Program-made: the position numbers and the translations under genes
Shown here: positions 6,946 to 62,674 of the stretch, one piece after another
How positions within the stretch are numbered: position 1 is the stretch's first letter
Layout: each line of letters starts with the position of its first letter
The notes under the pieces: generated by a model
Databases searched by the model: none
The model's input: the letters and a program-made list of their open reading frames with translations, nothing else
What the model was told of the DNA's origin: nothing
Origin: Sphyrna mokarran
Lineage: Eukaryota
Assembly: GCA_024679065.1 (NCBI GenBank)
Contig: JAGIQG010000008.1
Coordinates: 97,154,001 to 97,218,000, forward strand
Length of the DNA stretch: 64,000 bases
Reading direction: 5' to 3'

Positions 6946-7308
6946 AGCAAGGTGACCTGATTGTGTCAATGAATTCAAGAACTGAGAAAGCTATCGTAAA
7001 TAAAGATGTGCTTCTCGAATGCCGAGTATCTGGTTACACGACAGAAATTGATCTTAAAAATGTGGGAGTCCAGTGGTTCTACCAAAGATTTGGTGCTCCC
7101 GATACGCAAAGAAGAGAGGTATATCAGTTCACTAGTGGAAAGCATACGCCGTATAGAAAAGGAGCAGTAATATTTGATGATGAGCTGAAGAAAGGAATTG
7201 CTTCCCTTTTTCTTCCAAGCGTGCAGTTTGCTGAAGAAGGAGATTACACTTGTGTTGTTTTTATAACCCCAGATACTGGAAGTGGAAAATCATCAATGAC
7301 TGTTTCAG
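6946..7308 (+). CDS. Gene A IgV exon (B7-H6-like)
   Basis: tttgcag|AGCAAG...TCAG|gtagga; [47 protein letters not shown] with both Cys, the Trp and DYTC. Confidence 0.93.
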
Positions 7309-10300
7309 GTAGGAGTCACTAACAATGATTTCTTTCTTTGCTCGTGTAATCTGTTGAATTGCGACTGTGTTAAAGTTAGTACTAGGTCAGCCAAGAGTAG
7401 TCAATAATGTAGTACACACACTAGCGTGATATCCAAAATCCAGCAGCTCTGGGATTGAGACTATGGGATTTCAGGCTTTCCTGGGCAAATAGTCAAACCA
7501 CAAGCAGCTCAGTAAAGACTTTTAGTTGGTAGACTAGAGGTAGCCTGGAAATGCATGTCAGTAACCAAGAAGGTAGTGGTCAGAAATGGGGACAATCATT
7601 CTTTCTGGGTGACTCTTAAATGGCAATACATTTAGACCTATAGTGCTTTGAAAGTAGGGCCAACTTAAGGAGAAAAACTTGATTCCTTATGAAATTTCGT
7701 TAGGGAATTGTAAAGCTGGATGCTAACTGTTGTTTAGTTGCTGGAAGATTTACAAAACAATTGTGGTGTGCGAGTGACACATAGCACTGCGTGGCTACCA
7801 ATGTTGATTGAAATGTGCAATTTTGGCAAGCTGAGGTGGTGCCGCAATCATCAAATGTGTTCTGCTTTCATGTTAATAGATCTATTGAAATGTGTGATTG
7901 AAAAGAATAGAGTATTCTCTATTAGAGTATAAGGAGAGATTGCAAGAAGTTAGCCATGAACCAAAGATCTATTCAATGTCACCACCAAGTCTCCTAAAAT
8001 ATCAATTCCAATCAGAAAGGTACTGTTTACAATTGGAAAACATTTTTTTTTAAGTAAACTGGAGCATATTGTCAGAAACAGATCGCTGTCATTGTCATAA
8101 AGGAGACTTGCTTTGCAGAGCAATTGGATTGCAAAAGACTTTGACTATTTCTCTGGCTTTGACAGTACTAACTTGGACTTAATTGCTGATGGTTTAAAAT
8201 TTGAAGCCTGTTTTCAAAAGATTAAACATTTGGTTAATATTGTTGCTGTGTACCTTTTTGTATGTGAAATATACAGTTTTCAAATATAGTGATCTGATCG
8301 TCACAAGTTTGGCAAACACCAAAATTCGTTTGGACAACATTGATCCACTAGAATCACGGAACTTATTTTTGTTTGAAAAAGTACTTCAACTTACTAATTA
8401 GACAGAACAAAACTATTGCATCAGCACTAACAAAAATGCCACACTTTTAATTGGATCAGATCTTTTGCTGTTTGAATGCTAAAAATGGAACTTGAATTAT
8501 TTGTATGGATATTTGAGAAACCCATGTTGAACCAATACAATGCAACCCTCACATATATAGATGCAGCTGTTACATGTTGTGAACATCTGTCTTTCCCTCC
8601 TCCCCTCTGCATCGCCACCACCCTCAGATTTGGTACCATCATCCTGAAGCTAAATGCACTCCTCAGTATACTCAGCCAATGTGTTGAATTTCTTCGAGTG
8701 AGACGGAACTTGTTTTTGGCTAGAATGAAGACCGCCTTATACGAAAGCATACAGCAAAATTTTATCAGGGCCTAGATGGTCTGCACAGTTATTTTCAATT
8801 ATGCAAGAAGTTTAGAGAGAATTTTTGAGAGTTCTCAACTCTCCCAGGCGATTCCATGAATTTGTGTGAATGGGCATTTATATATAGTAATACGCAAGGC
8901 ACCGTAATTGGATAAGATTGGCTGATGGGCTACTGGGGTTTTTCTGTCCAAAATTATTCATATGTCAACATGCTCAGTTCTAAAATCAAGGTAGCATTTC
9001 AAATTTGGTGTGTTCTTTCATTAAGTTTATTTAGCAAAAATATTAGTGTACCAGCAGGCTACCCATATTGTTGATTTAGAGGAATTTTAATACAGGGGAA
9101 AGAGGTACACAAGATCTTCCAAAGGAATTGAGATCAAGTAGCCAAGTAATTGTGTTTTCCTTTATGCATGGAAAATAAAACAACTTCTTACTGCAAGTTA
9201 GAAAAATGTTATCCCCGTATATAATGGTTGCATGTAAATAGTTAAATTGAGCATAGCATGGAAAGAGAAAACTCGTTAATTAACAGCAACATACTGTGCA
9301 CTGTTATACTGCATTATTTTTCTTTGAATAAAACAGTGAAATGGGAGCATTCTGAAATATTGGTTTTCTTAGGGTAGAGACACCTAAATATCCTATACTT
9401 TGTCCATGTACTACTTTTTCCCACACATTGCATTTCCCTCCTTTTGTGAGGAAAGGACATTTTAACTTTTTTATTTCAATGTGAGCAGTCATTACATGGT
9501 CATATTATGTGAAAGAGTGAAAAAAGATTGAACATTTGTTATATTGATTTTCACAGCCCTACCAAAGGTGAGCTTATCCTCAACTGCAATCACAATTGAG
9601 AATGGTACAGAGAAGTCAGTGAAATGTGTCAGTTCTGGTTTTTATCCTGTCTCAATTGAGCTGAATTGGAAACAGAAAACAAAAGATGGGGAGCAAATCC
9701 TTTCAAAACACATCTGTACAGAATCCCCAGTTAAAAACGTTGATGGGACCTACAATGTTTCTAGTCACTTGAGGTTGCGTCCAACTCTTCAAGACAGTGG
9801 CAATGTTTATGTATGCTACGTAAACCACCGATCACTTAATGAAGCTTTGCAATTGAAGACCCAACTGACTGTCGAAGGTAAGTTAAATATTTTTAAGTAC
9901 TTGCACATGAAGTATGCTTTGTATTAAAAAAATCAGATACAAAATGAATTTGTATCAAAATGTACATTTAAGTTTAATATATTAATTAGAGACTCTTCTA
10001 CATTTTGGGTTGAATGATGCTGGTGAAAATGGCAAATGGAAATTTCAGATGAATGTAATAAGTATTTATTGTCTTAATTTCAGGCGGAAGAGTTTTTTTG
10101 TTCATGTATTCTAAACTGAAACATCAATGCCCCGATTGTTTTGGGTTCCTATCAGAGTTACTAATCTGAATTAAATGACCCCTGTTGAAGGTTTGTGCTT
10201 GAGTTATTTAAGAAAGACTTAGATGGGCACATGAACAGAATGGGAATGGAGGGGTATAGAAAACTGATTTAAAATAGGGACCATGAGCCTTGGGAGTCCC

Positions 10301-16300: not shown

Positions 16301-19300
16301 CGCCACTTTACAGGAAGATTGTGGAAGCTATTGAAAGGGTGCAGAGGAGATTTACAAGGATGTTACCTGGATTGGGTGGCATGCCTTACGAGGATAGGTT
16401 GAGGGAGCTCGGTCTTTTCTCCTTAGAGAGACGAAGGATGATAGAAGTGTATAAGATGTTGAGAAGTATAGACCGGGTGGATTCTCAGAGGCTTATTCCA
16501 AGGGCTGGAATGGTTGCTACGAGAGGTCACAGGTTTAAGGTGTTGGGGAATATGTACAAAGGAGATATCAGGGATAAGTTTTTCACTTGGGGTGGTGGGT
16601 GAGTGGAATCGGCTGCTGTCAGTGGTGGTGGAGGCAAATTCAATAGGGTCTTTCAAGAGACTTCTGGATAAGTACATGGAACTTAATAGAATTGAGGGTT
16701 ATAGGTAAGACCAGTAGGAAAGGATATCATCAGCACAACTTGTGGGCCGAAGGGCCTGTTTGTGCTGTAATTTTTTTCTATGTTGTAGAATTGAGCCCGA
16801 GGCCCTGGCACAGAGGCAGCAGCGCAAATCACTCTGCCGCCCCAATCATAAATCATAGAACTGGATTGCAACATTAAATAAAGAATGTGACAAATGAACA
16901 GCTTTAAAAGAAACATCTAAAAATGCAACAAAAGGAAACCCAAGATACATATGTAAAGAAACATGCCCACGTTTGATTTCATTAATAGTGCTAACCATTG
17001 TGCCACCGTTGCCTTAGTTGTTTAAATATACTCTGTGATGTATATTCCTTGTTATATCCATATCTTGGATATCCTCCTATCCTCTCAGATCCAGGGGCCA
17101 GGGTTCAATTCCAACCTCAGATGACTGTCTATGCAGAGTCTATATGTTTTCCCCAAATCCACATGTGTTCTTGCGGGTGCTCTGGTTTCCTCCCACACTC
17201 CAAAGAAGTGTGGGTTAGGTTGATTGGCCGTGCTAAATTGCCCTTTAGTGTCAGGTGGATTAACAGGCTAAATACATGGGGTAATAGGGATAAGGCCAAG
17301 GTAGGATTATTGTTGGTGCAGTCTCAATGAGCCGAATAGCCTCTTTTTGCACTATAGGCATTCTATGATCTTTTGAACTTAGGATTTGTTAATGAGTTTG
17401 GCAGCTCTTTAAAAATGTTTTCCCCATTCCATCTAATTGTGAAAATAGCTGTGCCTACTTTTATTTTGATCCCAGCATCCAAAAAAAACTTTTGTTTTTC
17501 TCTCCACAGATATCACCTGACTAGCAGAATACTTGTATTTCCTGTTTCCAATTTCTAGTATCTGTTTTCTTTTCATTATGATTTACTCTTGTGCCATGTA
17601 AATGAGCTGAGAAAGCTACATTATAGTAACATTTTCATTTCACGTAAGTATTGTGAAGATGTTTTTCAAAACTTTTAAGTTAAAATTTATTTATTATTCA
17701 CAAGTAAGCTTGCATTCATACTGCAATGAAGTTACTGAGAAAATCCCCTAGTCGCCAACTTTGGGTACACAGAATTTAGCATGGTCAATTCACCCAACCT
17801 GTGCATTGTTTGGACTGTGGGAGGAAACTGGAGCGCCTGGAGGAAACATATGCGTGCGCAAGTAGAATGTGCAAACTCCACGCAGACAGTAACCCAAGCT
17901 GGGAATCAAACCTGTGCCATTGTAATTCTGGAACTCGAGTAAAATTGAGGAATGCTGTAATATTGCAAAGACTGATTAACTTACACTTCTAAAAAGTTAA
18001 TGTTAATCAGATCGCTAAGCAACCTTTGTGAAATGTTAAAAATTCTCCATTAACTTGCTATCCACTTATAGTGTTTTACATAAGCCATTGCATTGGAATA
18101 AATCTCAATTAGCAGATATTGCTCCATTTTGCTATTTGCCATTGAAACAAATGTTTATTTTATCTACAGAGCCAGAGGTGGTCGTACCAGTGGGGATAAT
18201 AATACTATGTGTATTTCTGAGCGTATGGATATGTGTAGGGATCATTAGCGCTGGACTTCTTGTATATTTGAAGTACCGAAAAGGTAAAACAGCTTTCAAA
18301 TTACTTGACAGGAAGTATAAATTGACAGATTATTCTTGCTCTGTACTGTGATGGTTCATCTCTGTTGAAGATTTTAGCCCACAGCTTCATAGCTCCTCAG
18401 TGTGGGTTTTTGGAGGTAGCACAAAGATGTGCTGGGGAACCCCCTCTGGGAAATTTTCAATAAAGGTTGACCTGGCAATTGTCCAGAAACACTAAATTGC
18501 CCTGGGCAATTGGGCTGGAACCCAGTCTGATGAAACAATTTTAATTGCTAACTTTGGTTCTGCCAGTGTTATGCTAAAAGTTACTCTGAAACAGTTATAA
18601 GAAATAACTTCAGCGCAATCATTTTAAATGCCCAGACCCTGCACAGGATTCCCAACTCCGCTAACCATACCCAAGTGTTTTACCACACTTCTTTGAAATT
18701 CATACTATTTAATTTCTTCTGGAAAAATAGTCATGGGTCTATATGCCAGAAGCTGATGAAAATCATGCAGCTAACTGGTACTGATACATCTGGAGAAACT
18801 CGGTGCACTACACACAAATTCAACTTAAAGTCACATCAGTTCGAAAACAAGGCTTTGGGAGAAGTGGAGGTTTTCAGTAAAAACTTCAATAAAGTCATTA
18901 AAAGACTTGAATTTAAATAATATTGAAATAATGTATGTAATTAAAAAGATTTATACATCTTGTTTAAACCTTTACTTTATAATTGGATGCAAAACTATTT
19001 TACAAATTATTTTGAGTTATTTGTGGGAACTTAGTTTCCAGATTTCACAGAATGACTTGGTTACATCAACACAACCAATTTAAATCTGGGTAAAGCAATA
19101 ATATAGTGATAGCAGGAAGTCAAAAGGGCAGGTTTGCACATGGAAGTTTTTTAAAACATAATTTGGATCTCTTATGATGTTGCTGCAAGTGTGTTCTGAT
19201 TTCTTCTGCTTTGTTTTTGATTTGATTGTGCTGATCTGTGTTAGTCCACCATACTCTGCCTGTCTTTTGCACACATCATGTGTGTCTATTTTACCATCTC

Positions 19301-22300
19301 CCTCCCTTCTTTTGACTCTCATCATGGTGGTTGCCTGCTCTTTTTATGTCCACTGATCTTCCTCCCAGATCTGTGTTCTGTTTGGGTTAAGCATCTTCTT
19401 TGCTGATGTTGCTCACTATAATGAGGAATGCTGGTTTCTTTCGTGCATTACTGACCTCTGCTGTTTTGTTTAGTTGCTGCTATCTGTCCTTGTGTCCTGA
19501 TGTTTCAGTAATTTTGCCTTACTTTCATACTTGGTGTGTCATTTGTCTCTCTCTCTATATTTTATATATATATATGAAATATACACCTCTTTATTTTAAC
19601 CTGGGGATGCTAATCATTTTAGTCAAGGCAAGTTTGTTTCATGTCCCTATTTGATTTCATTTTGGCTAAATATTAATCTTCCTGTTTTATTATTGTTACT
19701 ATTTATTTCAGTAATAATGGTCAGTCATAGGATGGATTTGTGCTGTTATTTGTTTGAAATGATAGACCCTGTGATAAAGAATGGATAAAGTGCTAAATAT
19801 TTTTTTTTAAAGTCCCTCCGAAAGTTTCAGACATCAACAAACCTCCACGAATTGTACATTTGCAAGAAGCACTTTTGAATTGTCAGATTTCTGGGTATAA
19901 GCCTGAGAATATTTCTGTTAAGTGGTTTCTACAACGAAAAGACAAGAAATCAAATGTGATTTTTCAATGGACCCATACCCCAAGCAACACGCAGGATGCT
20001 CCTTCAGATGTCTGCCAGCATCTTATTTCAATGTGTGAAACTCAACATGATGAACACAATGAATCCTTCAAATTTGAGGTGCCTGCAGTTGACAGCAACA
20101 AAGATGGTAGCTCCAGTGTCAATTGCAAAGCCATGTTCTGGCCTGACGTGTATAAGGATGATGGAGCTATTCTTCGGGTTCAAGTTGATCATAGTGCTCT
20201 TGGAACGCCTATAATTAAGGAAATCAAGCTGAAAGTTGATGGAAGTAAGTATAAATCCCTCAGTGAATTTGATTTTGTTTAATTGGTTGTTACTTTTTGT
20301 GTACCAACCAATGATGTCAAGCGAACAGAACTAAAGAAATCTTGTTTATGAAGTGCATCTTTTTTTTTGTTTGACACAGATTTAAACTACCTTTTCAAGG
20401 ATAATATGGATAAAATGATCCACAGTTACACATAGTGGAAAACATGTCACCAGAATATTAAGCCACAAATTGCTGTGTCCATTAGTCCTGTAAATTTTAC
20501 ACTTCCTCCTTCAATTCCACAGCCCCTGTGTTTAGAATTAACTTTATGTTAGGTGCAATTGTGGAATAAATGCAACAGTGTTGCAACATTTGGAGAGCGG
20601 ATACTTTATTGTTTCTCATAGGCATGAGCTAAAGAACATTTTTCAAAAAAAAAATTCAAACTTTTGGGACAAAACAAGAACAATGGAGTAAAGGCATAAC
20701 CATATGTTTTAGAGGAAAATAGTTTTTTTTCAGAACTAGGGAATATTATCTACATATTGGATGCTGTAAGAATAATTTGCTTTAATCTCTGATACTTTTA
20801 AGAATGATGATAATTATTGTACATATTGCAGATAAATGCAATCCAATTGGACAAAAGTCCAGTTCTTGTGTTCCTGAGATAAGTTATAAAGTTATTTTTC
20901 TTTACAAAATTGAATCTTGATGCTACACAGATCTTAAATTTGCCTTCAACTTTCTCAATAATTTCCTAGAGAATCATAGTGGTATGTTTCTCATCACATA
21001 GAATTGCAACAACTATTTTTTCTTAAATTATTGATTTTAATGATGTGGAGATGCTGCCATTGGACTAGGGTGCAACAGTAAGAAGTCTCACAACACCAGG
21101 TTAAAGTCCAGCAGGTTTATATGGAATCCTGAGCTTTTGGCTGCGCTGCTCCTCCTTCAGGTGAGTGATGATGAAGAAGCAGTGATCCAAAAGCTCTCGA
21201 TTACAAATAAACCTGATGGACTTTAACCTGGTGTGGTGAGCTTATTGATTTTAATCATAAAAAATCAACAGATCGTTTAATTTATTGTTTTACCTATGCT
21301 CGAAACAATAATGATAGCAACATAAAACTAGTTCCTCAAACCAAAAGCATCATGCAGTTGTAGCTACATCACACAGTTTATTTAGTGCACAGTGATGTGT
21401 TTTGTTAAAATGATTATTTGAAACCATAAAGTACAACCTAATTAACTTTTAATTCCCATATTTAAAAATATGCCTGTTACTTCAGCAAGCGAGACAAATT
21501 CCCTAAGAGTGATATTTCTCCTGATAGTTATAAAGTTCAGTAAATTTCAGCATTAAATACTTGTGAATGCTAACATTCTTTAACATTTCTGAATTGAATT
21601 GAGGTAAAAAGTCAACAACTTGGAGACCACAATTTTAAGGCAGTTTGAGCATATTTTTTAAATGATAATTACCACATTTTCTGGAATAATTTCTGAAGAT
21701 GCCATTTTAAAACCTGAAAATCTAAGTTCTTGATTTTAAGCAAATAAGTTACTCAATGAAACATTATTTTGTTTTTTATCTCTTTGATTTGTCTTTTTCC
21801 TGACTTTTTAAGGCTTTTTTTAAAATGTTAATTCCATTAAATCGAAAAACATTGGGAGCTGACAATAAGACATTAATCAGCCACATGTGGTTCTGGGGCA
21901 AATCTCCAATTTAGATAGAGGAAGTACTTGTGCAAATTTTATGTCCCAGTGTCATTTATGCCCAAGGTTTAATGGAAGCATATTTAAACAAGCATCAGGC
22001 ATAATTCTGTAACTTTTATGCTAGATTTGCTCATTTCCTTCTTCTGAACTGATGAGAATAAGAACAAGATACAAGCAAAGGGCTTTTGGTTGCAGATAGG
22101 ACCATTTTTGATTCCATGTTTGGGAATGTTTAATTTTGAATTTTAGGCCAATTTCTAGGAGCCCCCACTCTATAATATTTGTAAGGTTTGAACTGATCAT
22201 CTTACATGTGCTATTTGTTTTGAATGAACTGACAGACAAAATAAATTATGACCAGGGATCAGTGGGAACCAGATCATTAAGTTCACTATGGCATACAATC

Positions 22301-33285: not shown

Positions 33286-33320
33286 AGCCACTTCAGAGAT
33301 ATAATTATAATTGTCTTTAG
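33286..33320 (+). CDS. Candidate terminal coding exon of gene A (EPLQRYNYNCL*)
   Basis: Strong acceptor ctgtttctttttgcctccag; a phase-1 join gives a short tail ending in TAG; no independent support. Confidence 0.3.
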
Positions 33321-33889
33321 AAGCACCAAATGTTGGATAAACTTGTTCTTCTCATGTATTTTATCTGCGTCCTATTCATGGTAGTGTTGCTTTTCCTAAA
33401 ATAAGCAGTCAAAAGTGAACACTATTACACTTATGGTTTATACAATGCCTTGCATTAATTTTGCCTCCTTTGCTTTTCATCCAGTGTCTATTTATAAGTG
33501 CTTTCCTGGTTTCTTATTAGCATCTTTTTAATTTTTGGCTTTCAAAATAACAATTTATACATCTGATTACTTTAAATTCTCCATTTCTTAATCCCTTTTA
33601 AAGTTTTATAAATCAGAATATATTTCTTCATATTTCTGATTATATTACTTATGCAATCTGCCAACGGGATCTATTTGCTCTTCCTCATCTGCCTGTTACC
33701 TCCTGACAACATCATCCAAAGTCAAACTTCACATGTAGCACAGCTCTACCTCACTAATGCTTTGAATCCCTCCATTGCCTGTGTCATTAGATTGCATATC
33801 CTAACATCCAGTCCTGGAGGGATTACCATTCCCTCATGTAGAATGTTGGGAAAACCAAAGTAGTCCTCTTATGCCCCCTCTCCAATAGA

Positions 33890-42269: not shown

Positions 42270-42563
42270 TCAACTTAATTTCAGCTGGAAGAATCTGCAA
42301 ATTGGGTCCATCTCAGTAATCACATCAAGTTGGAGTTTAGAATTGTCATCCTCTTGCTTTAGTACATAAGTTAAATAAGCGATGAAGCCTATATCAGTTA
42401 TAAACGGTGTATTAGTAATGCAACTCATATCTTCAACAGGGTAAACATGGCTGTACCAAGTGATGTGGGTGTTTTCTGCAGTGAATCCTGTAACTGTGCA
42501 GGAAACCATCACAGGCTGGCCAGCTTTAGGTTATTCTGTCTTACAAGTAATTTGTGGCACGTC
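42270..42563 (-). pseudogene. Degenerate sixth C1-like exon of gene B with an in-frame TAA
   Basis: tttccag|GAC: DVPQITCKTE*PKAGQPVMVSCTVTGFTAENTHITWY...; TAA at 42531-42533; phase-0 acceptor unlike the other exons; no second Cys. Confidence 0.65.
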
Positions 42564-45382: not shown

Positions 45383-45430
45383 CTTCATCATTTCCTAGGT
45401 TTTCATAAGCTGCATCTTCACTGTCAACAC
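45383..45430 (-). CDS. Gene B small cytoplasmic exon [16 protein letters not shown] (may instead read through to the stop at 45327)
   Basis: tttctctgtttag acceptor, phase 1 and in frame with D5; donor GAAG|gtgaag, or GAA|gtattc with exon end 45378. Confidence 0.6.
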
Positions 45431-48400: not shown

Positions 48401-51400
48401 TTTATTTATTTTTTAGAGCAACACAGCACGGGAAACAGGCCCTTCGGCCCAACGAGCCCGCGCCACCGTCATAACTATATAGTAACAATTCCATTATCCT
48501 ATTCTAATTTTAGGTTATTCCTAATATGGAAGAGTCTCAATGTAGGGACAATTTGTTTCCCAATCAGCCTAAGAGCGAATTTTTGGGATGTGGGAGGAAA
48601 CCGGAGCGCCCGGAGAAAAGCCACGCAACCACGGGGAGAACGCGCAAACTCCCGCAGAACCGGCCCAATTCCAAGTGTCTGCACAGCTACAGCGATAGTC
48701 ACTGAGCTGTCATGGTGCCCTTCAGATGGTCCAGATAAAGCACTCATTTACGACATGAAGCACCAGGCAACCCATGAATCAACATCCAAGAGCTGTCCTC
48801 GCACCACCTGCCGAATGCATGCTCCTTGTTGGTCAAGTATGGACCGAATTACCTGTGGAAAAAAAAGCCATAGTTAAACAGTCCTACTATATCCCTTATC
48901 TGCATACCGCTCATGTGGCTGTCCAAGAGACCCTTAAACAGCCCTAGCGTGCCTGCTCCCACCACCTTACTCGGCAGTGCATTCCACACCCCCACTACCC
49001 TTTGTGTGAAAAACTGCCCTCTAATATTCATCTTATACATAGCCCCCCTCACCCTAAGGCCATGACCCCTCGTCCTATCCATTTCTGAAGGTGGAAAAAG
49101 TTTACCACCATTTACTCTATCTATACCCCTTATAATCTTATACACCTCTTAGATCCCCTCTAAGCCGACGTCTTTCAAGGGAAAACAACCCCAGTCTATT
49201 TAATCGTTCCTCATAAGACAGTCCTTCCATACCAGGCAGCATCCTGGTAAACCTCCTCTGCACTCTCTCCAAGGACTCCACGTCCAGAAACTTAGCTAAT
49301 GTTTTGGAGTTTCAAGTTTGAATCCCACCAAGGCTGATGGTGGAATTTGAATTCAATTAAAACTAAAATCTGGAATTAAGAATCTACTGATGACCACAAA
49401 ACCATTGTTAATTGTTAGAAAAAACCTATCTGGTTCACTAATGTCCTTTAGGGAAGGAAATCTGCCTTCCTTATTCGATCTGATCTACATGTGACAAACA
49501 AGATCCAAGGTGACATGATGAGACGTTACATCCCCCTCCCGGGCTTGATCTAACGTTTCATCTTAGCCAAAAGGCCAAGGTGGCTTTGCAAAATTGCATC
49601 ACATAAGGTCTTGATTTAACCTCATTGGCTATTCTGATCCTTAACTTGGCTTAAGCGAACCATGATCACAGGCATCAGTCCACCCCTAGTGCAATGGACT
49701 AGCCTTTCCCTAGCCTCATCACGGGTTTCACCCCTATCAGATTTTAAGTATTTTTCCTTCTGAGAATACTCCCAAGACTGTGGCACATTTACGGGGGTCC
49801 ATACAGAAGTAAATAATCTTAAGATTGATGTATCTTATAAGGGAATTCTTTGAGAGAAAAAGTAAACCAGTGTGCATAATATATGTAGTTAATCGTACTC
49901 GCTTTAATTTCTTCAATACAATAAAACTGGTTCTTTTTTTTAGAAAATGAAATTTTGTGACATAGTTCTATTGGTTAGAATGTGTTCAGATTTCTCTTTC
50001 AAAGGTAGCAGTCTCAGAAGTGATTATAATGGCTGTTATCTTTGTTTAAACAGCCTCTATTAAAACATGTCACGTTCATGAATTTGGAACATATCTGTCC
50101 ATTTCCAAATAAGAAACAAGTTTTGTGGCTGACAGTTAGGTTCAAAGGAGAGTTGCATGCAGATGAGTGGAGGATGAGTGTGATTGGTACGTGGATGCAG
50201 ATAAAAAGGAAAAAAAAAACAGATACAGAAAGAGGGACACGAGCGATTTTTTGTGTGGAGAAGAAGCAAATTACACCAAGGAAAAGATCTATTTTTCCTG
50301 TTTCACAGGATAAAGGAGATGGGATCTCTTCAGAGGTACTTGCAAACTTCTAAGAGTGTCCAAAGTCTGGAAAGCTGCGTAAATAGCTTTGGGATGCTTA
50401 AGTACTGAATGTTTTCCCACAAGTGGCCAAACTGCACAGTGTTATAAATTGTCAGATGAAAGGAAACTCTGAAATCTGGAAACTACACCATCAGGACTGT
50501 TAAGACCAGAGAGCGTTCATAGACATATGAGTTTGTGCTGCTATTCATGAAACATGAAGGTGAAAGCTGTTGTTAGATAGGACTCCTATTTTGTGGAACT
50601 GTGTAGCTCTGCAATGTCACTTTTATGAGGGCTGGGGAGGGGAGGGGGGAGGGGGGGCAGGAGGAGGGGGAGGAGGAGGAGAAGGAGTGAAAATCAATGC
50701 TTGTAGTTGTGCAAGATCTGGGGGAGGTGGGATTATGTGGCCTCGCTTGAAATTCCCACCCAAGGTCAATGGAGATTTTCATTGTTGGAATCCTGCTGGC
50801 TCCAAATCTGTGGTGGGGGAGGCAGTAGGTTACGGCAATACTGTCTAAAGTAAAATGTACCTTTAAGTCATATCATTTACTTATTAATTAATGTGCACTT
50901 TTTGTTGGCTTTCATTCATGATAAAGAGAAAGCTCCAAAAATATAATCATGAGTCATTTTCTCATTTGATTTTCATCCAGTAAGCATAGTTATTTTGGTT
51001 TGTGGTAATGGTTGCTTACCCAGTTGATCGAGCACCCAGCTGTCTTCCAATGGCTCTTTTAGGCTTTCATGTTCTACTCTGCACGTGTATGTCTTTCCAA
51101 CATCAGCCCTGGTCGGTACACTCTTCACACTACTTGTCAAGTAATAGAGTCCATCATGTCCCATAGTTGGCTTTTCAGATCCTTGTGTCATTGCTTCACC
51201 GCTTTTGAGCCAAGTAACTTTGATGTTCTTGGGGTAGAAAGAATGTATTCGACAGGATAAAGTCATAGGTTTTTCTGCAATTATTTCTTCTGCACATGTT
51301 ATCTTGTCCAGTTTTGGAGGGGCTGAATAAGAAACAGGAGAAACAAACTTAGTGTAGATTTTAACAGAGATAGATTAGAGATACTGGGTCTGGATTCTAC

Positions 51401-54400
51401 CCTATCTCAGCCAATGGCCAGAAATTTAATCCATTGTGTTCTGAAAATTCAGAATGGGGCTAAGTGTAAAATAAAAAGTTACACAATAACCTCATTATCA
51501 GAAATATCATGCTCAGGACTCTTCACTCATTTAAAACGTTGAAAATACTACATACCAGTAATGTGTAGAGTTATTTCTTTCATCGCCACACTATTAGTGC
51601 ATCTATGTTGTACCTCACAGATATACTTTGTGAGCTGGTCTTCAAGTACATCTGGTGTAATAATTAGGATACTGGTGATGCCATATGATTCATCTTTATA
51701 CTTAATCTCATTTATTTGATGTTTATACTTGTGTATCATCCCATCGTCAGCATCAAAAATTGTTCTGTTGTCCTGATCCAAATGAACAATTTTTTTCAAC
51801 CCACCATCCATCCTCACTTGTTGCCATTGTATCATTAATGGTCTTGGTTTAAAGCCATTGACTGAACAAGTCAAGGCCACAGGTTCATTATGATGAGCTT
51901 GAAGCGGCGCCACAACATCTGAAACTTTTGGTGGGACTTTGGGAATAAAAAACAAAACAGAAAATAGTCAATGACTTAATCCAAAACAACTTTCAGCATT
52001 AATAAGAGTGAGAAAATACTATTTCACAGTGGATTTCTCCATAATTTGGAGACTACAGATGGCAGAACTGCTTTATTACAATTAAGCACATGAAATTTCA
52101 TATATTCAAAGACACAAGTTAACAAAATAAATCCAGACTGCATTCAAAAAGCATTAATAATAATGTTCATGATTTACCTCCTCTCACATCCAGTGTTACA
52201 GATTTCACAGCAGGTTGTGCAAAGGTTTTATGCTGAACGTGGAAAATTAATTCGGCCTCATTATCTCTGAATACATCAGGATACATTTTGATACTGCCTT
52301 GTACTTTGAAGGTTCCATCTCCATTATCATAAAATACTGGCTGCAACTGCTGAAAGGATGGGTCTTCTTCATTGCCATTGATAAGAGGCTGCACTTTATA
52401 GGTTGTATCTCTGGGCGCTGAACTGGTTCTGTGCTCCTGGCTGTGCCATTCAAAAATCTTTTCTTTTTTATCTTCCCTCCTCTTTACAAATAAATAAATT
52501 GCAATGTTCCGAGGTTTAAATCTAAGAATTTGGTAACTGACGATGGTTTCTTCTAAATGGTACATGATGGGAGGTTTGCAGGTAATTTCTGGGGGAACTA
52601 ATAAAACAAAATAAAACTTAATTTAAACACTCATTTGTTGACTCTTATTTTCTTGCTAGGCCACAGGCTGAATGAAGTATATATAGAAGACATTATACTT
52701 TGTGTATCTACACAGTGAGAAGTCTTACAACACCAGGTTAATGTCCAACCGATTCATCTAGAATCACAAGCTTTCAGAGAACTGCTCCTTCATCAGGTGA
52801 GTGGTACTCAAGCTCGTCATTCCAAATAAACCTGTTGGACTTTAACTGGTGTTGTGAGATTTCCAATCCAATGCTGGCATCTTCACATCATATCTACGCA
52901 GTACAGGGATCTCAGTTAGGCTGTGCTACTTTATTACAGCCCTTCTCCGTAAGTCATTTCAGCCAAAGACGACCAAAGGCATGCAAATTGCAGTCAGTGG
53001 GAATCAAATTTCTGTAACCTTTTTGTGCTCATTCAAAAAGATAGGTGCTAAAGCTGGCCCCAGGCACAAAATTGGCTATGGCTCAAGATCAAGTTAATCA
53101 CCACATCCAACCTCTGCTATTACCAGTCATTTGTTTGGCTTCAAGGAAGATCTTAAAATTAAGAATAAATAGAAACTCAACATGTCCTGCAACATCTGTG
53201 GAGGGAGTGTCAATGCCTCAGGTCAGTAATCTCTCCAAATCAGCCAGATCTGCTGAGAATTTCCAGCATTTTAATGTTTCTACTTCCAGCATCCACAGGA
53301 TATTGTTTTTCTTTTAAAATTAACCTTATTTTGGCACAAGAATACAATAGTCACATTTTAAAAGTTTTGAATTGTATTTTTATTTTAATTTAATAAGAGG
53401 GAGATCAATATTAGTAGAGAAATGGTACTAGGAATTTTGAAGATAGTGAAGGTGGATAAATCCCCGGGGCCTGATAATCTCCAGAGTACTTAAGGAAATG
53501 GCTCTAGACATAATGGATGCATTAGTGGTCATCTTTCAGGACTCTACAGTCCCTGCAGATTGGAGGGTAGCAAATGTCACTCCAATATTCAAAAAGGGAG
53601 GTAAAGAGAAAACAAGGAATTATAGACCATAAGCTTAACACCAGTGGGGGGAAAATTCTTGAATCCATTATCAAGAACTTTATAGTACAGCATTTAGAAA
53701 GCAGTGATGGGATCAGACAGAGTCAGCGTGGATTTATGAAGGAGAAATCATCTTGACAAATCTGTTGGAATTCTTTGAAGATGCAACTAGTAGTGTTGAC
53801 AAGGGAGAACCAGTAGATGTAGTATATTTGGACTTTCATAAAGCGTTTGACAAAGTCCCACACAAGAGATTATCTTGCAAGATTAAAACACATGGGATTA
53901 GAGGAAGTGTATTGAGATGGATAGAAAACTGGTTGGGAAAGAGAGAACAAAGAGTAGGGATTATGGTTGCTTTTCAAACTGGTAGGCAGTAATTAGTGGG
54001 GTGCCACAGGGATCAATGCTGGGACCCCAGCTTTCACAATATATATTAATGATTTGGATGAGGGAACAAAATGTAACATGTCAAAGTTTGCAGATGATAC
54101 CAAGTTGGGTGGGAGGGTGAACTATGACAAAGATGCAGAGATCCTTCAGAACGATCTGGACAAGTTGAGTGAGTGGGCTAATCAATGGCAGATACAGTAT
54201 AATTTGGATAAGTGTGAGGTTATTCACCTTGGAAGTAAAAACAAAAAGCCAGATTACTATCTGAATGACTGTAAATTGGGAGAAGGGATATGCAGCGGAC
54301 CTAGGTATCTTTGTGCACCAGTCACTAAATATAAGCATGCAGGTGCAGGATACGGTAAAGTAGGCAAATGGCATATTGTCCTTCATTGCAAGAGATTTTG

Positions 54401-57400: not shown

Positions 57401-60400
57401 TTCTAACCTAAGCAAGACAGGCTTTTGAATTGGACCAATGAATTTAAAGCAAGTAAACAGTGACACAACCAATGGAATTCAAATGTGAGAACTGACAGTC
57501 TCAAGCCACTAATATCACAGGAATGCTGAGGTAATTCCAGGCATATAAATCCAGATGAGAGGGGAAATTGTCAGAATATGCTTGCTATATTTTAGGTCAG
57601 AAGGAGGGTAGGTGAAGCTGGCATGTAAATTCTGCCGTTTCATATGTCTTCACAAAATTGCCACCTAACTACAGGAAAATCAATATCTGGAATCAATACA
57701 AAAGTATTCCAGATGTGAGCATTAGAAGAAAATTAGGAGAAAATTTGTACTTCTAAAAGATGCTTGTTTATATTTTAGTTGACAGTGACTGAATTCTGTA
57801 ATGATTTATTTCATTATTGCAGAGGGAGTCTTGTGCCTGAACAGCATTTATTGGGGTTTTATTCCATTTGTTAATTTGTTTTAAAGTTGTCACCAGCTTT
57901 AAAAAAAAACCTATTAATTGTTCGTTGTCAGATCCTGTTTTAACAAAACTAATAACTTCCTGCTCCCTCACACATACTTGTACAAGATTTCGAAGGAAGG
58001 TATATCCCTTTTGGGTGGTTCCAAGATTGTGCAGAAGGGAAAAATCATCTCCACGTCGTAACAGGGAACAAAGAGTTTGATCTCACAGATGGATTTGCAT
58101 GGAAAAGCTGCTTCTTGATGGAATTTGTAAGACAAAGGCCAGGCTTGTAGCAAAGGGATCTGAAGTAAATTTAGGAGACCAGGAGACCAGAGATTCATCC
58201 ATAGCAGGAAAGGTTATTTTAAGATCTTCTTGGTTCTGTTAGCTACAGGTGCCTATGAATGCAAATCTATCAATGTTAAAGCTGCTTTTTAGTGGGAGCA
58301 TCAGTTTCAGAGAGATATTTTTCTCCATTCTCCCAAAGAGGGAGCTAACACTGAAGGAAACTCTGGAAGTTAGATAGATGTCAGTGTATATATAATCTAG
58401 AGTTTGCATTTTTCCATAAGGCATTTTTGTTAAAGTTAGGCTATTGCCAGTAGAAACCAGGTCTTGTGATGTTTTACTGGCACTGTGGAGGAAAACTTTC
58501 TGGTATCTTTATGATGCATGTCAATGATCATGTTGAAGCTATTGTATTTTCTGTGCTGAGGAAGGAGTTCAAGGCTGGAAGGAAGGCTTCAGGAGCTTCC
58601 AAACATTTTGGGCTGGAAATTGGACAGACTGAGGCAGGTGTCACTTTACGTTAGCAATCTTATTTGCAGAGTCCAATTGCAATTAGTGGTGGTCAGGTTT
58701 CACAAAGGACACAGTGGTTTCTAAGATGGGAAAAGAGGAACTCTGAAGTTTGGACAACTGAATTGCCTACGTAGTCAGACCAGACTGGATGTTAATCTTG
58801 ATGTCTTAGAGTTAAGTACAAAAATGAATCTTCCTATGGTGGAAGACATAATGAGAGCAAACAAAATGTTAGCCCAACTGAAAATGCAAGAGCAAGTTTT
58901 GAGGATCCTACGTTTGAGGGATTTTAGGCACCTGAAACTCATAGATTATAGTTATTCTACACTAATTTATGTGATGGTTTTCAAACCACAATCAGATTAG
59001 ACCTGATTTTACTGGATGGGCTCGAAGGGCAACAGCAGGGAGTGGAACTCTCTCCTTCAGAGATTCAAAATGGATCTGACAAGCCAAACTCTTCTATATT
59101 GTTACCATTTTATCATTTTAAGTTAGTCAAATGGCAGTACTGAACTTTCATGTTGCTGAAAAAGAAATATATTTTTGTTGAAGATTTTCATCTTGCAATC
59201 ATCAGGATAACTTTCCAGCATACCAAATGTAAATGATGAGAGTGCTGATTGGCTGACAAATGGGCTCTCGATTAGTAGAGACATTACCCCACAGAGAATG
59301 CATCAGTTCGTGGCGACTGCCAAGCACGTGGTTGAAATTTAAACCAGGCAATATGACTTTAATTGGTCAAGGTATTGTCCTGAGGAGTGAATTGCTTGAC
59401 ACTTTTTATTTAGCTGAAAAACAGCACAATGTGTGTATTTCTTTGCAAAGACCAGAGCTCTGTGAATTCATAAATATGATGTCAAGATGCAGCATTGGAC
59501 TGGTGTAAACACAGTAAGAGGTGTCTCAACACCAGGTTTAAGTCCAACCAGTTTATTTGATAGTAGTCCCACACTAGTAATCCATGGATAGATTAATGTG
59601 GGATTACTATCAAATAAACTGATTGGACTTAAACCTAATGTTGTAAGACTTCTTACTGTGTTTACCTATTCATATATAGCCTTCAGTACACAGAAAATTG
59701 CTTGTCAGCATGATCCTTAGTACACTGAGGATTATTTAGCAAATGTCCAAACATGGAGTCACATGTAATGTTGGACACTGAGTTTTGTAAGCACACCATA
59801 GTTGGATAAAGTCTGCCTTACCTATTGCAAACAGTTTGCCAATCTTTGTATATATATATAAAACATTGCATTGGCACAGATATTCATATACCACAATACT
59901 CAATTCTGTGATTGGCAGAATGTCTTTTTGACTTGGTGGCAGCATCCTGTTAGTGGTGATTCTAAACTATTATGTGTAAAATGAAGGAATATTTTTTGAA
60001 ACAACTGCACCAATTAATGATGGAGCTTTACATTTGACAAAATAAAAGTTCATTTTCCAGAGACTGAGAAATAGTTTGCAGCCAGGTCGCCCAGAGCTAA
60101 ATCTAACATCCAGGTTACTTTTTCTAACTGCTGGGTACATAAACACAAGGACTATTATGGGAAAAATCTGCAATAAGTAGCCAAGAATGATGAGAACAAA
60201 GGCCACTCAAATACATAGTTACTGCAAATAAAAAGGTTTCACCAGTATATACATTACCTCCTCTGAATTTGTACCAACATAAAATTGCACCGAGAAGCAT
60301 ACATAATGATACAAATAGAAATAGCAATATATTAACTGCTAAATTCTCCTCAGGCTCTGAAGTTTCTGAAAAAGAAATACAGAAGCTTTCAGATTAAAAT

Positions 60401-62674
60401 TACCACAATAAACTGTCATTTGCACAAAATGTTGTCTGATTTGCTTCATTTCTTTTAAATCATAATTTAAGATAATTAAATCATTAAAGAATCTGATATT
60501 ACAGATCTGTGCTGTTAACAAACTCTCTAAACAATAGTCTAGAAATATAGTGGTGCAAAAGGAGTGTGATTAATGTAAATAAGCTGCAATTACCGACGAC
60601 CCAGAGAGGATTTTACTTTGTAATTTCACAGATCAGTTCATTTTCATCCACATTGGAGTGACGAAAACAAGATTTTTAAAAGACAGTTTTAAACAAAGAC
60701 TGCAGCAGGCAAATAGAGGATGGATAGAATCATAGAAGTTTATAGCATGGAAAAGGTCCCTCGGCCCAATTTGTCCATGCTGCTTTTTTTAAACTTCTAA
60801 ACTAATCCTGATTTGCCCACGCTGTCCCTCTATACCCATTGTACCCCTCAACCTCCTACGCTCCAGAGGAAAGAGTCCCAGTCTATCCAGCCTCTCCTTA
60901 ATTCAATCCATCAATTCATCAAGTGCAGGTAGCATCTTAGTAAATCTTTTCTGCACTCTTTCTGGTTTAATAATACCCTTTCTATAACAAGGTGACCAGA
61001 ACTGGACACAGTATTCCAAGTGTGGCCTTAACAATATCTTATGCAACTTCAACAAGACATTCCAACTCCTGTACTCAATGTTCTGAGCGATGAAACCAAG
61101 ATGCCAAATGTCTTCTTCACCACTCTGTCCACCTGTGACTCCATCTTCAAGGAGCTATGAACATGTACCCCAAGATTTTTGTTCTGTAAATCTTCCCAAA
61201 GTTCTACCACTAATTGAGCAGTCAATCCACCAAAATGCATCACCTTGCATTCGTCTAAATTAAACTCCATCTGCCATTTGTCAACCCACTGGCCCAATTG
61301 GAATAAGGAACTATGGTCAACTTAGGCCAGAACTTGCATAGTGACAGAGATCCTTTCTTTCTGATGCAGAAACGTTGCCCCCAAATGTGGCATTTTCATG
61401 CAGGGTGGGGTGGAGTGGGAAGTGGGGGGATGCAGACAGTATCCCAAATTGAACATCCAGGGTTAACTGAAGCAGCTTCCATAATTTTTGGCACATGGGA
61501 TGGGAGAATTGCTTGATGGCCTTTTCGCAGGATTCGTGAACACATGCACTTCTCCTACAGCTGGAGAACAGGCACAGTCAGGAGTGTACTGGAAACTAGT
61601 GGGAAGAGAAATGTATTTTAAATGTGATTATCAGGCCCCACATGGAATTCTCCAGGATAGCATCTCCTAACCCTACCAGAATAGTTCTCCTCTTGTGGAG
61701 AACTAGTGAGACATTGCCAGAGTGAAGGTGGGGGGGGAATTGGCTCCCCCCCCCTCCAGGGGGGTGGGGCAGTGGGGGGGAGGGAGGGTGTGATACCTCC
61801 TGGGCATGGACATCCTGATACTGTCCAAGGGGCAGTGCCAAGAGGATGGGGGCTGGGGATGTGACCTGGAGAGCAAATGGTGGCCCCAATGAGGTCGGGC
61901 TTAAAGGAAGGGGTAGGGCCAAGAGGCGGAGCTTATATTCGGCAGGATCTAATGTCGATCAGTGGGGGTGAAGGGTTCCTGCTGCCACGCTGCATTGGGA
62001 TTGATTGGGACTGGAAGGAGGCTAGTGGTCAGAGAGGGTCTGCCTCATGGGGAGTGGCAGTGTGAATCACTACTGTGGGGAGGGGGTAGTGTGGAGGGTG
62101 GCAGTGCTGGAGATCGAAGCATTCCAGGAAGGGGAGGAGGGGGGCGTCAAATCAAATAAATTAACTCAAATTAACTGAGGGACAAAGTAAAAGAGGCAAC
62201 TCCCCAAAAGGAGGGGGAACAAAGACTTAGGTCAGATGCAAATCCAAGTAGAAATCCAATAGTAATAAATAGGCAACACGCTTAAATGTTTGTAAACTAT
62301 AATAAAAACAGACTGAAAAATCTTTAGCAAAGAAAGGAACGTACCTATCACTCTGAGCGTACTTTCTTGTGAAATGCCATCAGGACGAACTGACCGGTGA
62401 GTCACAAAACATCTGTACACATCTCCATCATCATCCAATGTTGGTACAATTGTTATTTTGCTGGAAACACTGAAGGTTCCATCATTATTGGGAGTGACAG
62501 CTCTGGAACAGACATCTGTTAGGTTTTTTGGTTCCTTAGATCCTTTGTTTGAGATCTTTTGCCAGATGAGTCCATGCTGCTCAGGGTAAAATCCTGTAAC
62601 ATTACAACTCAAGGTTCCCTCAGATCCAATCAAAATCTTGATGTGTTCTCTGGATAAACTGATCACTGGCCGAG
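45383..62674 (-). CDS. Gene B: paralogous B7-H6/NCR3LG1-like protein, [V outside window]-C1-TM-(C1-like)x5-YENL exon; complement join(62345..62674,60258..60365,52178..52597,51556..51936,51020..51322,46995..47306,45705..46019,45383..45430)
   Basis: Open phase-1/1 exons in the same order as gene A; domain-by-domain similarity of C1 and D1-D3 to gene A. Confidence 0.83.
45705..46019 (-). CDS. Gene B post-TM domain D5 (lacks first Cys)
   Basis: tttcag|CTCAT...AAAG|gtgggt; [31 protein letters not shown]. Confidence 0.88.
46640..46892 (-). repeat. HE1-like SINE
   Basis: Minus strand gtggttagcactgctgct..ggttcgattccc. Confidence 0.8.
46995..47306 (-). CDS. Gene B post-TM domain D4 (lacks second Cys)
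   Basis: tttatag|GAATT...CCAG|gtaggt; [19 protein letters not shown]. Confidence 0.88.
48405..49285 (-). mobile_element. CR1 3' part with a long 3' UTR, nested in a SINE
   Basis: [34 protein letters not shown]. Confidence 0.9.
51020..51322 (-). CDS. Gene B post-TM domain D3
   Basis: attcag|CCCCT...CTGG|gtaagc; [28 protein letters not shown], collinear with A-D3. Confidence 0.9.
51556..51936 (-). CDS. Gene B post-TM domain D2
   Basis: cccaaag|TCCCA...ACTG|gtatgt; [24 protein letters not shown], collinear with A-D2. Confidence 0.9.
52178..52597 (-). CDS. Gene B post-TM domain D1 (both canonical Cys and the core Trp replaced)
   Basis: ttattag|TTCCC...GGAG|gtaaat; [43 protein letters not shown], collinear with A-D1. 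Confidence 0.85.
52711..52890. mobile_element. Penelope-terminus-derived mini-palindrome in the intron upstream of gene B D1
   Basis: Arms caacaccaggttaatgtccaac / gttggactttaactggtgttg; TSD TATCTAC[A/G]CAGT at 52705-52716 and 52891-52902. Confidence 0.78.
53400..54978 (+). mobile_element. CR1-type LINE RT region, decayed
   Basis: [32 protein letters not shown]. Confidence 0.92.
55441..58985 (+). mobile_element. Decayed Ty1/copia-type LTR retrotransposon
   Basis: LTR-like TGTTA... segment; gag-like [22 protein letters not shown] (about 56168); RT motifs [15 protein letters not shown] (58135-58158), NVKAAF, MHVND, QTRLDV. Confidence 0.7.
59477..59667. mobile_element. Penelope-terminus-derived mini-palindrome
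   Basis: About 70-bp inverted arms gtaaacacagtaag...tttatttgatagtagtcccaca / tgtgggattactatcaaataaa...cttactgtgtttac; TSD ATTCATA[A/T]ATA at 59466-59476 and 59668-59678. Confidence 0.8.
60258..60365 (-). CDS. Gene B transmembrane exon ([36 protein letters not shown])
   Basis: tttttcag|AAAC...GGAG|gtaatg; 108 nt; an alternative in-frame acceptor would start the exon at 60356 (EPEEN, like gene A EPEVV). Confidence 0.87.
60728..61300 (-). mobile_element. CR1 3' fragment
   Basis: [20 protein letters not shown]; atcatagaagtttatagcatgg tail. Confidence 0.85.
62345..62674 (-). CDS. Gene B extracellular IgC1 exon
   Basis: aatgcag|CTCGG...ATAG|gtacgt; [30 protein letters not shown]. Confidence 0.92.

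Follow-up and report, generated by a model that had tools for sequence, protein, structure and literature searches.

C1-set immunoglobulin (Ig) domains are a hallmark of antibodies, T-cell receptors, MHC molecules, tapasin and B7-H6, and are regarded as confined to extracellular or lumenal parts of proteins. B7-H6 (NCR3LG1) is known as the ligand of NKp30 (NCR3) and is reported to be linked to MHC or NCR3 genes in cold-blooded vertebrates. The tail of mammalian B7-H6 is non-Ig and under 200 residues long; its function is obscure even in humans. Butyrophilins (V-C-TM-B30.2; TM, transmembrane segment) possess a cytosolic B30.2 module that reports the internal state of the cell to lymphocytes. 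Extracellular-type beta-sandwich repeats are present inside the cell in titin, obscurin, filamin and the tail of integrin beta-4, the last a case of such repeats in a receptor tail. We know of no example of a C1-set domain in the cytosol, and a phrase search of the literature for a cytosolic C1-set domain found none. In soluble Fas, an in-frame cassette TM exon is skipped and the secreted chain keeps a normally cytoplasmic domain. Sharks have the non-rearranging genes UrIg and UrIg2, in which a V domain is followed by many C1-type exons (PMC12227049).

The window, a stretch of 64,000 nt from Sphyrna mokarran, contained two genes of the B7-H6 (NCR3LG1) family in convergent orientation, gene A on the + strand and gene B on the - strand, and apart from them only repeats (Table 1). 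Pfam comparison of nine repeat-like open reading frames yielded two sub-threshold RVT_1 matches only. Gene A is arranged as V, C1, TM and four C1-set exons, gene B as C1, TM, five Ig exons, an acidic micro-exon with a YENL motif and a disabled last Ig exon. Splice sites were AG/GT and phase 1 throughout, and in both genes the TM exon is in frame and located between the first C1 exon and D1, the first post-TM Ig exon. All exons named in the initial annotation were recovered with the junctions given there (AG/GT, phase 1-1). Its five post-TM exons of gene B were present as well, but incomplete as a set: the micro-exon and a sixth Ig-like exon had to be added.

Table 1. Exons of gene A and gene B in the window, with profile matches (E-values unless bits are given) and sequence features
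Feature	Position	Strand	Characteristics
Gene A V-set exon	6946..7308	+	Pfam V-set 5.5e-10; phase 1-1
Gene A ectodomain C1-set exon	9557..9877	+	Pfam C1-set 8e-14
Gene A TM exon	18170..18283	+	114 nt; acidic N-flank, hydrophobic core, KYRK
Gene A D1	19813..20244	+	Pfam C1-set 4e-5, 24.3 bits; family D1 profile 5.9e-60
Gene A D2	24004..24381	+	Pfam C1-set 9e-10
Gene A D3	25753..26064	+	Pfam C1-set 6.6e-8; both canonical cysteines retained
Gene A D4	29041..29364	+	Pfam C1-set 3.8e-7; last Ig exon, F-strand cysteine absent
Gene B ectodomain C1-set exon	62345..62674	-	Pfam C1-set 2.2e-10; splice sites
Gene B TM exon	60258..60365	-	108 nt; SEPEE, hydrophobic core, YKFR
Gene B D1	52178..52597	-	Family D1 profile 4.6e-33; both canonical cysteines lost
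Gene B D2	51556..51936	-	Pfam C1-set 2.1e-9; family D2 profile 5.2e-42
Gene B D3	51020..51322	-	Pfam C1-set 5.5e-18; family D3 profile 9.1e-35
Gene B D5-type exon	46995..47306	-	Pfam C1-set 4.1e-9; family D5 profile 5.7e-32 (best)
Gene B D6-type exon	45705..46019	-	Pfam C1-set 7.2e-9; family D6 profile 2.9e-34
Gene B micro-exon	45383..45430	-	48 nt, acidic, YENL motif; AG/GT, phase 1-1
Gene B last (sixth) Ig-like exon	42270..42563	-	In-frame TAA at 42533-42531

Among PDB structures, the V exon of gene A matched human NCR3LG1 best (6yjp_C, 2.3e-12), with CD276 near (3.2e-12); it shared 95 % identity with LOC144498907 of Mustelus asterias. The ectodomain C1 exon retrieved UrIg2 first (1.6e-17) and B7-H6 second (3pv6, 1.3e-15). 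Together with nurse-shark relatives deposited as B7H6, these matches bore out the proposed B7-H6-like identity; the accompanying term receptor was loose wording, B7-H6 being known as a ligand. Gene A has the V-set followed by a C1-set (not C2) ectodomain of B7-H6. Gene B presents the C1 only: family profiles gave no V-type match for it anywhere in the window, and the V exon is placed past the end of the window. Neither a pattern search of positions 1-6945 nor scoring against the leaders of three orthologues (best BLOSUM score 19) revealed a leader exon for gene A, which is located outside the window. An N-terminal signal peptide was seen in orthologues only.

The post-TM exons were assigned to the C1-set with the Pfam gathering score of 21 bits (PF07654). 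Eight of the nine intact exons passed, namely all four of gene A (24.3-39.2 bits) and four of five in gene B (36.3-65.5 bits). The exception, D1 of gene B, had no match to any Pfam family at E<=1. D1 of gene A contains a long insert and lacks the F-strand cysteine, and D3 matched domain 3 of SIRP-alpha best in the PDB (6.6e-7). The fourth post-TM Ig exon of gene B in the initial annotation is of the D5 type; the D4-type exon of the orthologues is absent from gene B, with no D4 profile match on the - strand. The D6-type exon has retained the F-strand cysteine and lost the B-strand cysteine. An acidic Y-x-N-[LI] motif stands at the place equivalent to the micro-exon in six of eight shark genes examined; an acid-flanked tyrosine is also a context favoured by tyrosine sulfation in the secretory pathway. 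The last Ig-like exon of gene B scored 18.2 bits against C1-set, under the gathering score, and shared 50.6 % identity and a common ...LKLS end with the C-terminal domain of Callorhinchus LOC103174895. Its TAA corresponds to a sense codon in orthologues.

At the 3' end of gene A, orthologues stop 2-7 residues past D4. By arithmetic, a transcript contig runs about 1056 nt past D4, and the first AATAAA downstream on the + strand is at 30487; the end could be a read-through or an additional exon. A terminal exon near 33322 was rejected, as it would contribute only a 6-residue tail in phase 1 without an orthologue match.

With the D2 exon of gene A as query, 199 proteins were obtained at E<=1e-3. 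Two hundred proteins, all of 300 aa or more, were fetched, and 129 of these had an ectodomain and a TM ahead of the first D domain. Protein searches extended the V-C1-TM-D1..Dn layout, as the initial annotation had asked, to sharks, bony fish and amphibians: it was found in sharks, rays, chimaera, bichir, coelacanth, lungfish and amphibians including salamander, with position-by-position orthology of D1-D6 across these lineages. The span from chimaera, sharks and rays to bony vertebrates is about 450 million years. The D domains contain alignment columns of invariant Trp, Cys and Pro. Between elasmobranchs and bony vertebrates the identities were 34.8 % for V, 39.8 % for the ectodomain C1, 39.4 % for D2 and 33.1 % for D3; conservation is similar in the post-TM domains and the ectodomain, and highest in D2 and the ectodomain C1. 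Public databases already contain the family, as hundreds of gene models and as two named records from nurse shark. These two are full-length relatives of 980 and 1092 aa, deposited under the name B7H6, which align with the rest of the family and have its V-C1-TM-D layout. For amphibian relatives (1051-1116 aa) NCBI uses the name NCR3LG1, and a protein search aimed at amniote NCR3LG1 returned cartilaginous-fish paralogues only. A description of Ig domains after the TM of B7H6 was not found in the part of the literature that the search covered, and six LOC/UniProt identifiers of the family were not mentioned in the literature searched.

Each gene has one TM exon. In gene A, the TM has a mean Kyte-Doolittle hydropathy of 2.96 over 20 residues. 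The acidic N-flank and basic C-flank claimed for both TMs are there in the sequence, and among 29 relatives the TM flanks had a mean net charge of -0.55 (N-terminal flank) and +2.7 (C-terminal flank). The C side was the more positive in 29 of 29 rows, one of them mislocated, in agreement with the single-pass type I topology proposed at the outset. A six-frame hydrophobicity scan found no other credible TM exon, so that the reported lack of a second TM stands. Candidates for a TM or leader at 28755-28814 (+), 33339-33398 (+) and 45596-45655 (-) were stop-bounded and lacked an orthologue counterpart. Most family proteins scanned for hydrophobicity had one strong TM and none after the array. Since the array follows the only TM and this layout is widely shared, the post-TM C1 domains are probably intracellular.

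Cysteines are distributed differently on the two sides of the TM. V and C1 keep both canonical cysteines, whereas a canonical cysteine is lost in four of seven post-TM domain types: in all lineages compared, D1, D4 and D5 have no F-strand cysteine and D6 has no B-strand cysteine. In the alignment of 29 proteins, only D2 and D3 have after the TM the canonical B-F disulfide pair of the C1-set, both cysteines being retained in 29/29. Non-conserved cysteines amounted to 262 in 18,562 residues after the TM and to 7 in 6,358 before it, counts in which shared ancestry is ignored. This is a 13-fold difference (1.41 versus 0.11 per 100 residues), with the higher density after the TM in each of the 29 proteins; for the exons of the window, the counts were 16/1050 after and 0/333 before the TM. 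The sequence pattern supports post-TM domains that behave as if in a reducing compartment. Cysteine parity per domain was discarded as a topology test in favour of stray-cysteine density, because a third cysteine is conserved in the ectodomain C1 too; post-TM domains were about equally odd and even. N-glycosylation sequons were not depleted, with observed/expected ratios of 1.09 after and 1.15 before the TM. Of 29 proteins, 15 have a sequon at one column of D1, its residues varying, and D5 has two adjacent sequon columns, each occupied in 9 of 24 proteins.

Transcripts connect the TM exon to the array. A contig of run X1, presumed to be RNA (3394 nt, depth 21.5, 0 mismatches), lies on 18168-18279, 19809-20244 and 24004-24159 with GT..AG joints. 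It contains in frame the TM-D1 junction of gene A proposed for checking (18283>19813), and likewise the D1-D2 junction 20244>24004. The 776 nt that precede the TM exon in this contig agree in length with a leader plus V and C1 (92 + 684 nt). Five proteins from skate-like transcript contigs of 3.2-3.6 kb all read V-C1-TM-D1-D6, and both nurse-shark B7H6 records contain the TM. Contigs, X1 included, drop rare isoforms. In three of 13 RefSeq isoform pairs, isoform X2 is without exactly the TM exon; these pairs are from Carcharodon, Cetorhinus and Bombina, thus great white shark, basking shark and a toad. Further TM-less V-C1-D1 models are P0019 and P0072. The precise removal of the TM exon means that the same domains can be secreted, and a form that places them outside the cell probably exists too. 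In the intron just upstream of D1 of gene A (19360-19759) an unexplained depth of 1-3.5 was observed.

We regard it as fairly probable that these B7-H6-family genes encode a V-C1 head outside the cell, a type-I TM and a cytosolic, C1-derived Ig rod with an interaction role. The predicted order is signal peptide, V-C1 ectodomain, one type-I TM helix and a linker-free chain of C1-set-derived Ig domains, D1-D4 in gene A and, in gene B, D1-D3, D5, D6 and then an acidic Y-x-N-L linker. The main mRNA would include the TM exon, and the Ig chain would thereby be synthesised on the cytosolic face, forming a rod fixed directly beneath the membrane; for this species we infer that the TM-including isoform is dominant. 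The rod may be a protein-protein interaction module of the ligand-bearing cell. It may pair chains, as C1 domains usually do, or dock conserved cytosolic partners, for which D2 is the obvious candidate surface. Such a rod would couple the internal state of the cell or its cytoskeleton to how the V-C1 head is presented to NKp30-type receptors. In proteins of the gene B type, a tyrosine motif would in addition serve signalling or endocytosis. A minor secreted form would arise where the TM cassette exon is skipped.

The strongest competitor, in our judgement rather unlikely, reverses these roles: a secreted, TM-skipped V-C1-D1..Dn chain would be functional and the cytosolic array a tolerated by-product. 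The TM-containing mRNA would then supply only membrane-anchored V-C1, and the soluble chain would be comparable to UrIg. The exact skipping in RefSeq isoforms of three species from sharks to toad, the two TM-less models, the conserved sequon columns of D1 and D5, and the intact cysteine pairs of D2 and D3 in 29/29 proteins are in its favour. Secreted chains of V plus C1 are known in sharks from UrIg (PMC12227049). However, the X1 contig shows the TM-containing form, all five skate-like contigs and both nurse-shark records have the TM, and the TM exon is in frame in both genes. Half-cystine domains and free, unconserved cysteines at the post-TM density are unusual for secreted Ig. Moreover, TM skipping in Fas also secretes a cytoplasmic domain; by this precedent, the skipping of a TM exon is no guide to where the domains normally work. 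A very unlikely explanation is that the post-TM frame is transcribed but the protein is not made or kept, its conservation reflecting recent duplication and gene-model bias. The decay of gene B, with the missing D4-type domain and the stop in the last Ig exon, fits this, but positional orthology of D1-D6 over about 450 million years, the invariant Trp, Cys and Pro columns and a D-domain identity equal to that of the ectodomain speak against it. A separate gene or transcript of D exons never joined to the TM exon, which the initial annotation had named as its refutation, has only the little unexplained depth upstream of D1 to recommend it and is exceedingly improbable, given the TM-D1 and D1-D2 joints with 0 mismatches in one X1 contig of gene A and the same order in 129 of 200 database proteins.

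The proposed membrane-anchored form with a cytosolic rod has partial parallels in several known systems. With B7-H6 it has in common an ectodomain of a V-set and a C1-set domain and the single type-I TM, whereas the tail of the shark type consists of 4-7 Ig domains and that of mammals is non-Ig. The closest analogy is to the butyrophilins, with a B7-related ectodomain, one TM and a folded cytosolic beta-sandwich. Their module differs from the C1-set-derived Ig array found here; no exon of gene A or gene B had a Pfam match to SPRY, PRY or B30.2, and the two genes fall outside the butyrophilin family. UrIg and UrIg2 share a V followed by multiple C1 exons, and the ectodomain C1 finds its best PDB match in UrIg2. 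In UrIg2, however, the nine C1 domains all stand before the TM, each with its canonical disulfide, whereas here the TM follows the first C1 and most post-TM domains are without this disulfide. UrIg genes have a VJ-type V domain, and all their C1 domains are N-terminal to the TM, or a TM is missing; neither TM arrangement holds for gene A or gene B. The repeats of titin, obscurin, filamin and integrin beta-4 are of the I-set, filamin or FnIII types, not C1-set. Fas belongs to an unrelated family and is an analogy only, for the logic of the TM cassette exon.

As to the origin of the family, the chances are about even that the B7-H6 of ancestral jawed vertebrates was two-faced, with an NKp30-facing V-C1 outside and a cytosolic rod of 4-7 or more C1-derived domains that was later replaced in mammals by a short unrelated tail. 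The rod could then be an inside-out sensor or a clustering scaffold, comparable to B30.2 of butyrophilins, with a phosphotyrosine docking site Y-x-N-[LI] in one paralogue type. This would be the first case of the C1-set domain type working in the cytosol. A cytosolic array would overturn the rule of strictly extracellular C1-set domains by a family about 450 million years old. B7-H6 would gain an ancestral intracellular module to study and would become the second B7-type ligand, after the butyrophilins, coupled to a folded cytosolic domain. The cDNAs are already public and make the topology directly testable. If it is instead the secreted isoform that works, early vertebrates would have had a soluble multi-C1 B7-H6 made via an unusual TM cassette exon.

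The window consists of AT-rich vertebrate DNA free of N runs and carries two immunoglobulin (Ig) superfamily genes in convergent orientation with repeats between them, the B7-H6-like (NCR3LG1-like) genes A and B. Exons were searched singly, while natural full-length orthologues represented the whole chain. All exon boundaries of both genes had AG/GT sites, and the Ig and transmembrane (TM) exons were phase 1-1. The Pfam C1-set cut-off of 21 bits was exceeded by all four Ig exons behind the TM exon of gene A (D1 to D4) and by four of the five intact ones of gene B; the family D1 profile was built from 29 orthologues, leaving out the exons of the window.

Exons of the two B7-H6-like genes in the window
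Feature	Position	Strand	Profile match
Gene A V	6946-7308	+	Pfam V-set 5.5e-10
Gene A ectodomain C1	9557-9877	+	Pfam C1-set above 21-bit cut-off
Gene A TM	18170-18283	+	
Gene A D1	19813-20244	+	Pfam C1-set above 21 bits
Gene A D2	24004-24381	+	Pfam C1-set above 21 bits
Gene A D3	25753-26064	+	Pfam C1-set above 21 bits
Gene A D4	29041-29364	+	Pfam C1-set above 21 bits
Gene B ectodomain C1	62674-62345	-	Pfam C1-set above 21 bits
Gene B TM	60365-60258	-	
Gene B D1	52597-52178	-	family D1 profile 4.6e-33; Pfam: no match
Gene B D2	51936-51556	-	
Gene B D3	51322-51020	-	
Gene B D5-type exon	47306-46995	-	
Gene B D6-type exon	46019-45705	-	
Gene B acidic micro-exon with YENL, 48 nt	45430-45383	-	
Gene B last Ig-like exon	42563-42270	-	disabled by in-frame TAA

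Both TM-to-D1 junctions of the initial annotation (18283>19813 and 60258>52597) coincided exactly with these exon boundaries, and its five intact post-TM domains in gene B were upheld, the last Ig exon carrying a stop. Family domain profiles in six frames revealed in the window no further Ig exon, no V exon of gene B and no D4-type exon of gene B, including 47307-51019 (-) between its D3 and D5-type exons; a D4-type domain was present in every full-length relative of the gene B type checked by profile. A leader exon of gene A was not found within 1-6945. In gene B the acceptor of the final Ig-like exon is good, yet in the orthologue frame a TAA is located at 42533-42531 (-), a position occupied by a sense codon in the relatives from nurse shark, great white shark and Callorhinchus; in the phase-1 frame a stop follows after seven codons. 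Due to these stop codons the gene B chain terminates soon after the micro-exon. The domain lacks the F-strand cysteine and scored below the Pfam cut-off. Possible explanations are decay of the exon, an allelic TAA or an error in the assembly.

Outside the Ig exons, near-identical ORFs of 209 aa were present as a head-to-head inverted pair (2483-3112 (-), 3932-4561 (+)), adjoined by ORFs of 131-145 aa (3141-3578 (-), 3466-3861 (+)). The arrangement resembles a mobile element present twice in opposite orientation; a Pfam search with the two + strand ORFs yielded no family. Reverse-transcriptase-like fragments were located in introns and between the genes (53753-54401 (+), 15870-16602 (+), 34190-34922 (+), 36622-36867 (-), 61049-61297 (-)), of which only the first two were matched by Pfam RVT_1, below cut-off (3.6e-6, 8.9e-5).

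The TM exon of gene A is joined to the Ig array. A contig of 3394 nt and depth 21.5 from X1, a 2017 run kept as contigs, which was the sole run containing the stretch and is presumed to be of RNA, covered 18168-18279, 19809-20244 and 24004-24159 without mismatches or gaps. The two joints in it, both GT..AG, correspond to 18283>19813 and 20244>24004, bearing out the annotated junction between TM and D1. The additional matched letters 18168-18169 are identical to the last two of the C1 exon, and the 776 nt upstream of the TM exon correspond to V and C1 (684 nt) with a further 92 nt left for leader and 5' UTR. Non-repeat X1 depth in the two introns was confined to a signal at 19360-19759 and about 9 units beyond the contig in the bin 20160-20359. 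The former signal (+ strand, depth ~1-3.5) lies just upstream of D1 and ends before the exon; pre-mRNA, a repeat or an alternative start might account for it. Since the contig continues for ~1056 nt beyond D4, the gene A orthologues end 2-7 residues past D4, and the earliest + strand AATAAA downstream of D4 is at 30487, a read-through of the D4 donor is plausible.

Both genes belong to a known, named family whose sequences are public; a literature search of partial coverage yielded no description of Ig domains behind the TM of B7-H6. A search with the D2 exon alone retrieved 199 proteins at E<=1e-3, of which 105 reached <=1e-10 and 25 reached <=1e-30; those looked up were named 'uncharacterized', 'Ig-like domain-containing', NCR3LG1 or B7H6. 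Relatives occur in many sharks, rays and skates, in Callorhinchus, in bichir, reedfish and sturgeon, in coelacanth and lungfish, in frogs, toads and salamanders, and in one skink. Among 200 fetched proteins of at least 300 aa, 129 had an ectodomain and TM ahead of the first D domain, and a hydrophobicity scan detected no second TM after the array in most matches. Both nurse-shark B7H6 records (980 and 1092 aa, so named by their depositors) are organized as V-C1-TM-D1...D6, the longer with one more final domain. The orthologue of gene A is Mustelus asterias LOC144498907 (81-95% identity per Ig exon, TM 62%); gene B is a divergent paralogue of the 1092-aa type. Some paralogues in Callorhinchus and Chiloscyllium (P0237-P0243, NCBI names 'DDB_G0290685-like' or 'ribosome-binding protein 1-like') have the V-C1-TM head, and a long acidic low-complexity repeat tail replaces the Ig domains.

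An alignment of 29 proteins revealed positional orthology of the D domains from sharks to Ambystoma and Polypterus. Identities between elasmobranchs and bony vertebrates were 34.8% for V, 39.8% for C1 and 27.4% for TM, and 28.6, 39.4, 33.1, 25.9, 32.2 and 31.4% for D1 to D6; thus the array is about as constrained as the V-C1 head. The best solved relative was human B7-H6 for the V exon of gene A, UrIg2 followed by B7-H6 for the ectodomain C1 exon, and SIRP-alpha domain 3, then beta-2-microglobulin and antibody constant domains, for the D3 exon. A third cysteine in the ectodomain C1 (...ICT... context, alignment column 270) is shared by 28 of 29 relatives and the two genes of the window (9557-9877 (+), 62345-62674 (-)) and might form an interchain bond linking B7-H6 chains.

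The initial annotation had proposed a type I topology with the array on the cytoplasmic side. Its single TM with acidic N-flank and basic C-flank was recovered; the cytosolic location is probable. The chains have one strongly hydrophobic segment with a mean flank net charge of -0.55 (N) and +2.7 (C), the C-flank being the more positive in 29/29 rows, with the Lissotriton row mislocated in a truncated model. Signal peptides are present in orthologues, and D1 begins immediately behind the basic stop-transfer residues. Cysteines were lost in every lineage, in the F-strand of D1, D4 and D5 and the B-strand of D6; V and C1 always retain both canonical cysteines. Secreted domains typically avoid free cysteines, cytosolic domains tolerate them. 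Cysteines outside conserved columns amounted to 262 in 18,562 residues post-TM versus 7 in 6,358 pre-TM (1.41 vs 0.11 per 100; Fisher's test 4e-25, inflated by shared ancestry), their density was greater post-TM in all 29 proteins, and the exons of the window had 16/1050 versus 0/333. In six of eight shark genes and in gene B, an acidic Y-x-N-[LI] linker separates D6 from the last domain (16 proteins examined, anchor motif missing from six); in one gene the motif reads YSDL, another no longer has the tyrosine, and the linker of Callorhinchus is acidic without tyrosine. Such a motif could serve SH2 docking or endocytic sorting. Tyrosines flanked by acidic residues are also sites of the sulfation type, as would suit an array functioning outside the cell in a TM-skipped chain.

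This alternative, which we regard as rather unlikely, draws on three of 13 isoform pairs compared that differ by exactly the TM exon (39 residues in Carcharodon and Cetorhinus, 34 in Bombina), predicting from sharks to toads a secreted chain with all domains lumenal. The density of sequons post-TM is not below chance (observed/expected 1.09 vs 1.15 pre-TM), sequon columns are partly conserved in D1 and D5, and D2 and D3 retain both canonical cysteines. Another of the 13 pairs, Hemiscyllium ocellatum X1/X2 (P0197/P0178), skips D1: X2 retains the TM and loses exactly the D1 exon (145 residues), thus the post-TM Ig exons behave as cassettes as well. We consider the chain with the TM to be the main product: the X1 contig, five independent transcript-contig proteins and both nurse-shark B7H6 records all show this form. 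A minor secreted isoform would be compatible with a cytosolic array; soluble Fas, which arises via skipping of a TM exon, offers an analogy. With the TM-containing chain as main product, a cytosolic and functional array appears reasonably likely. It may act as a C1-type pairing or docking rod beneath the membrane, comparable to the B30.2 domain of butyrophilins.
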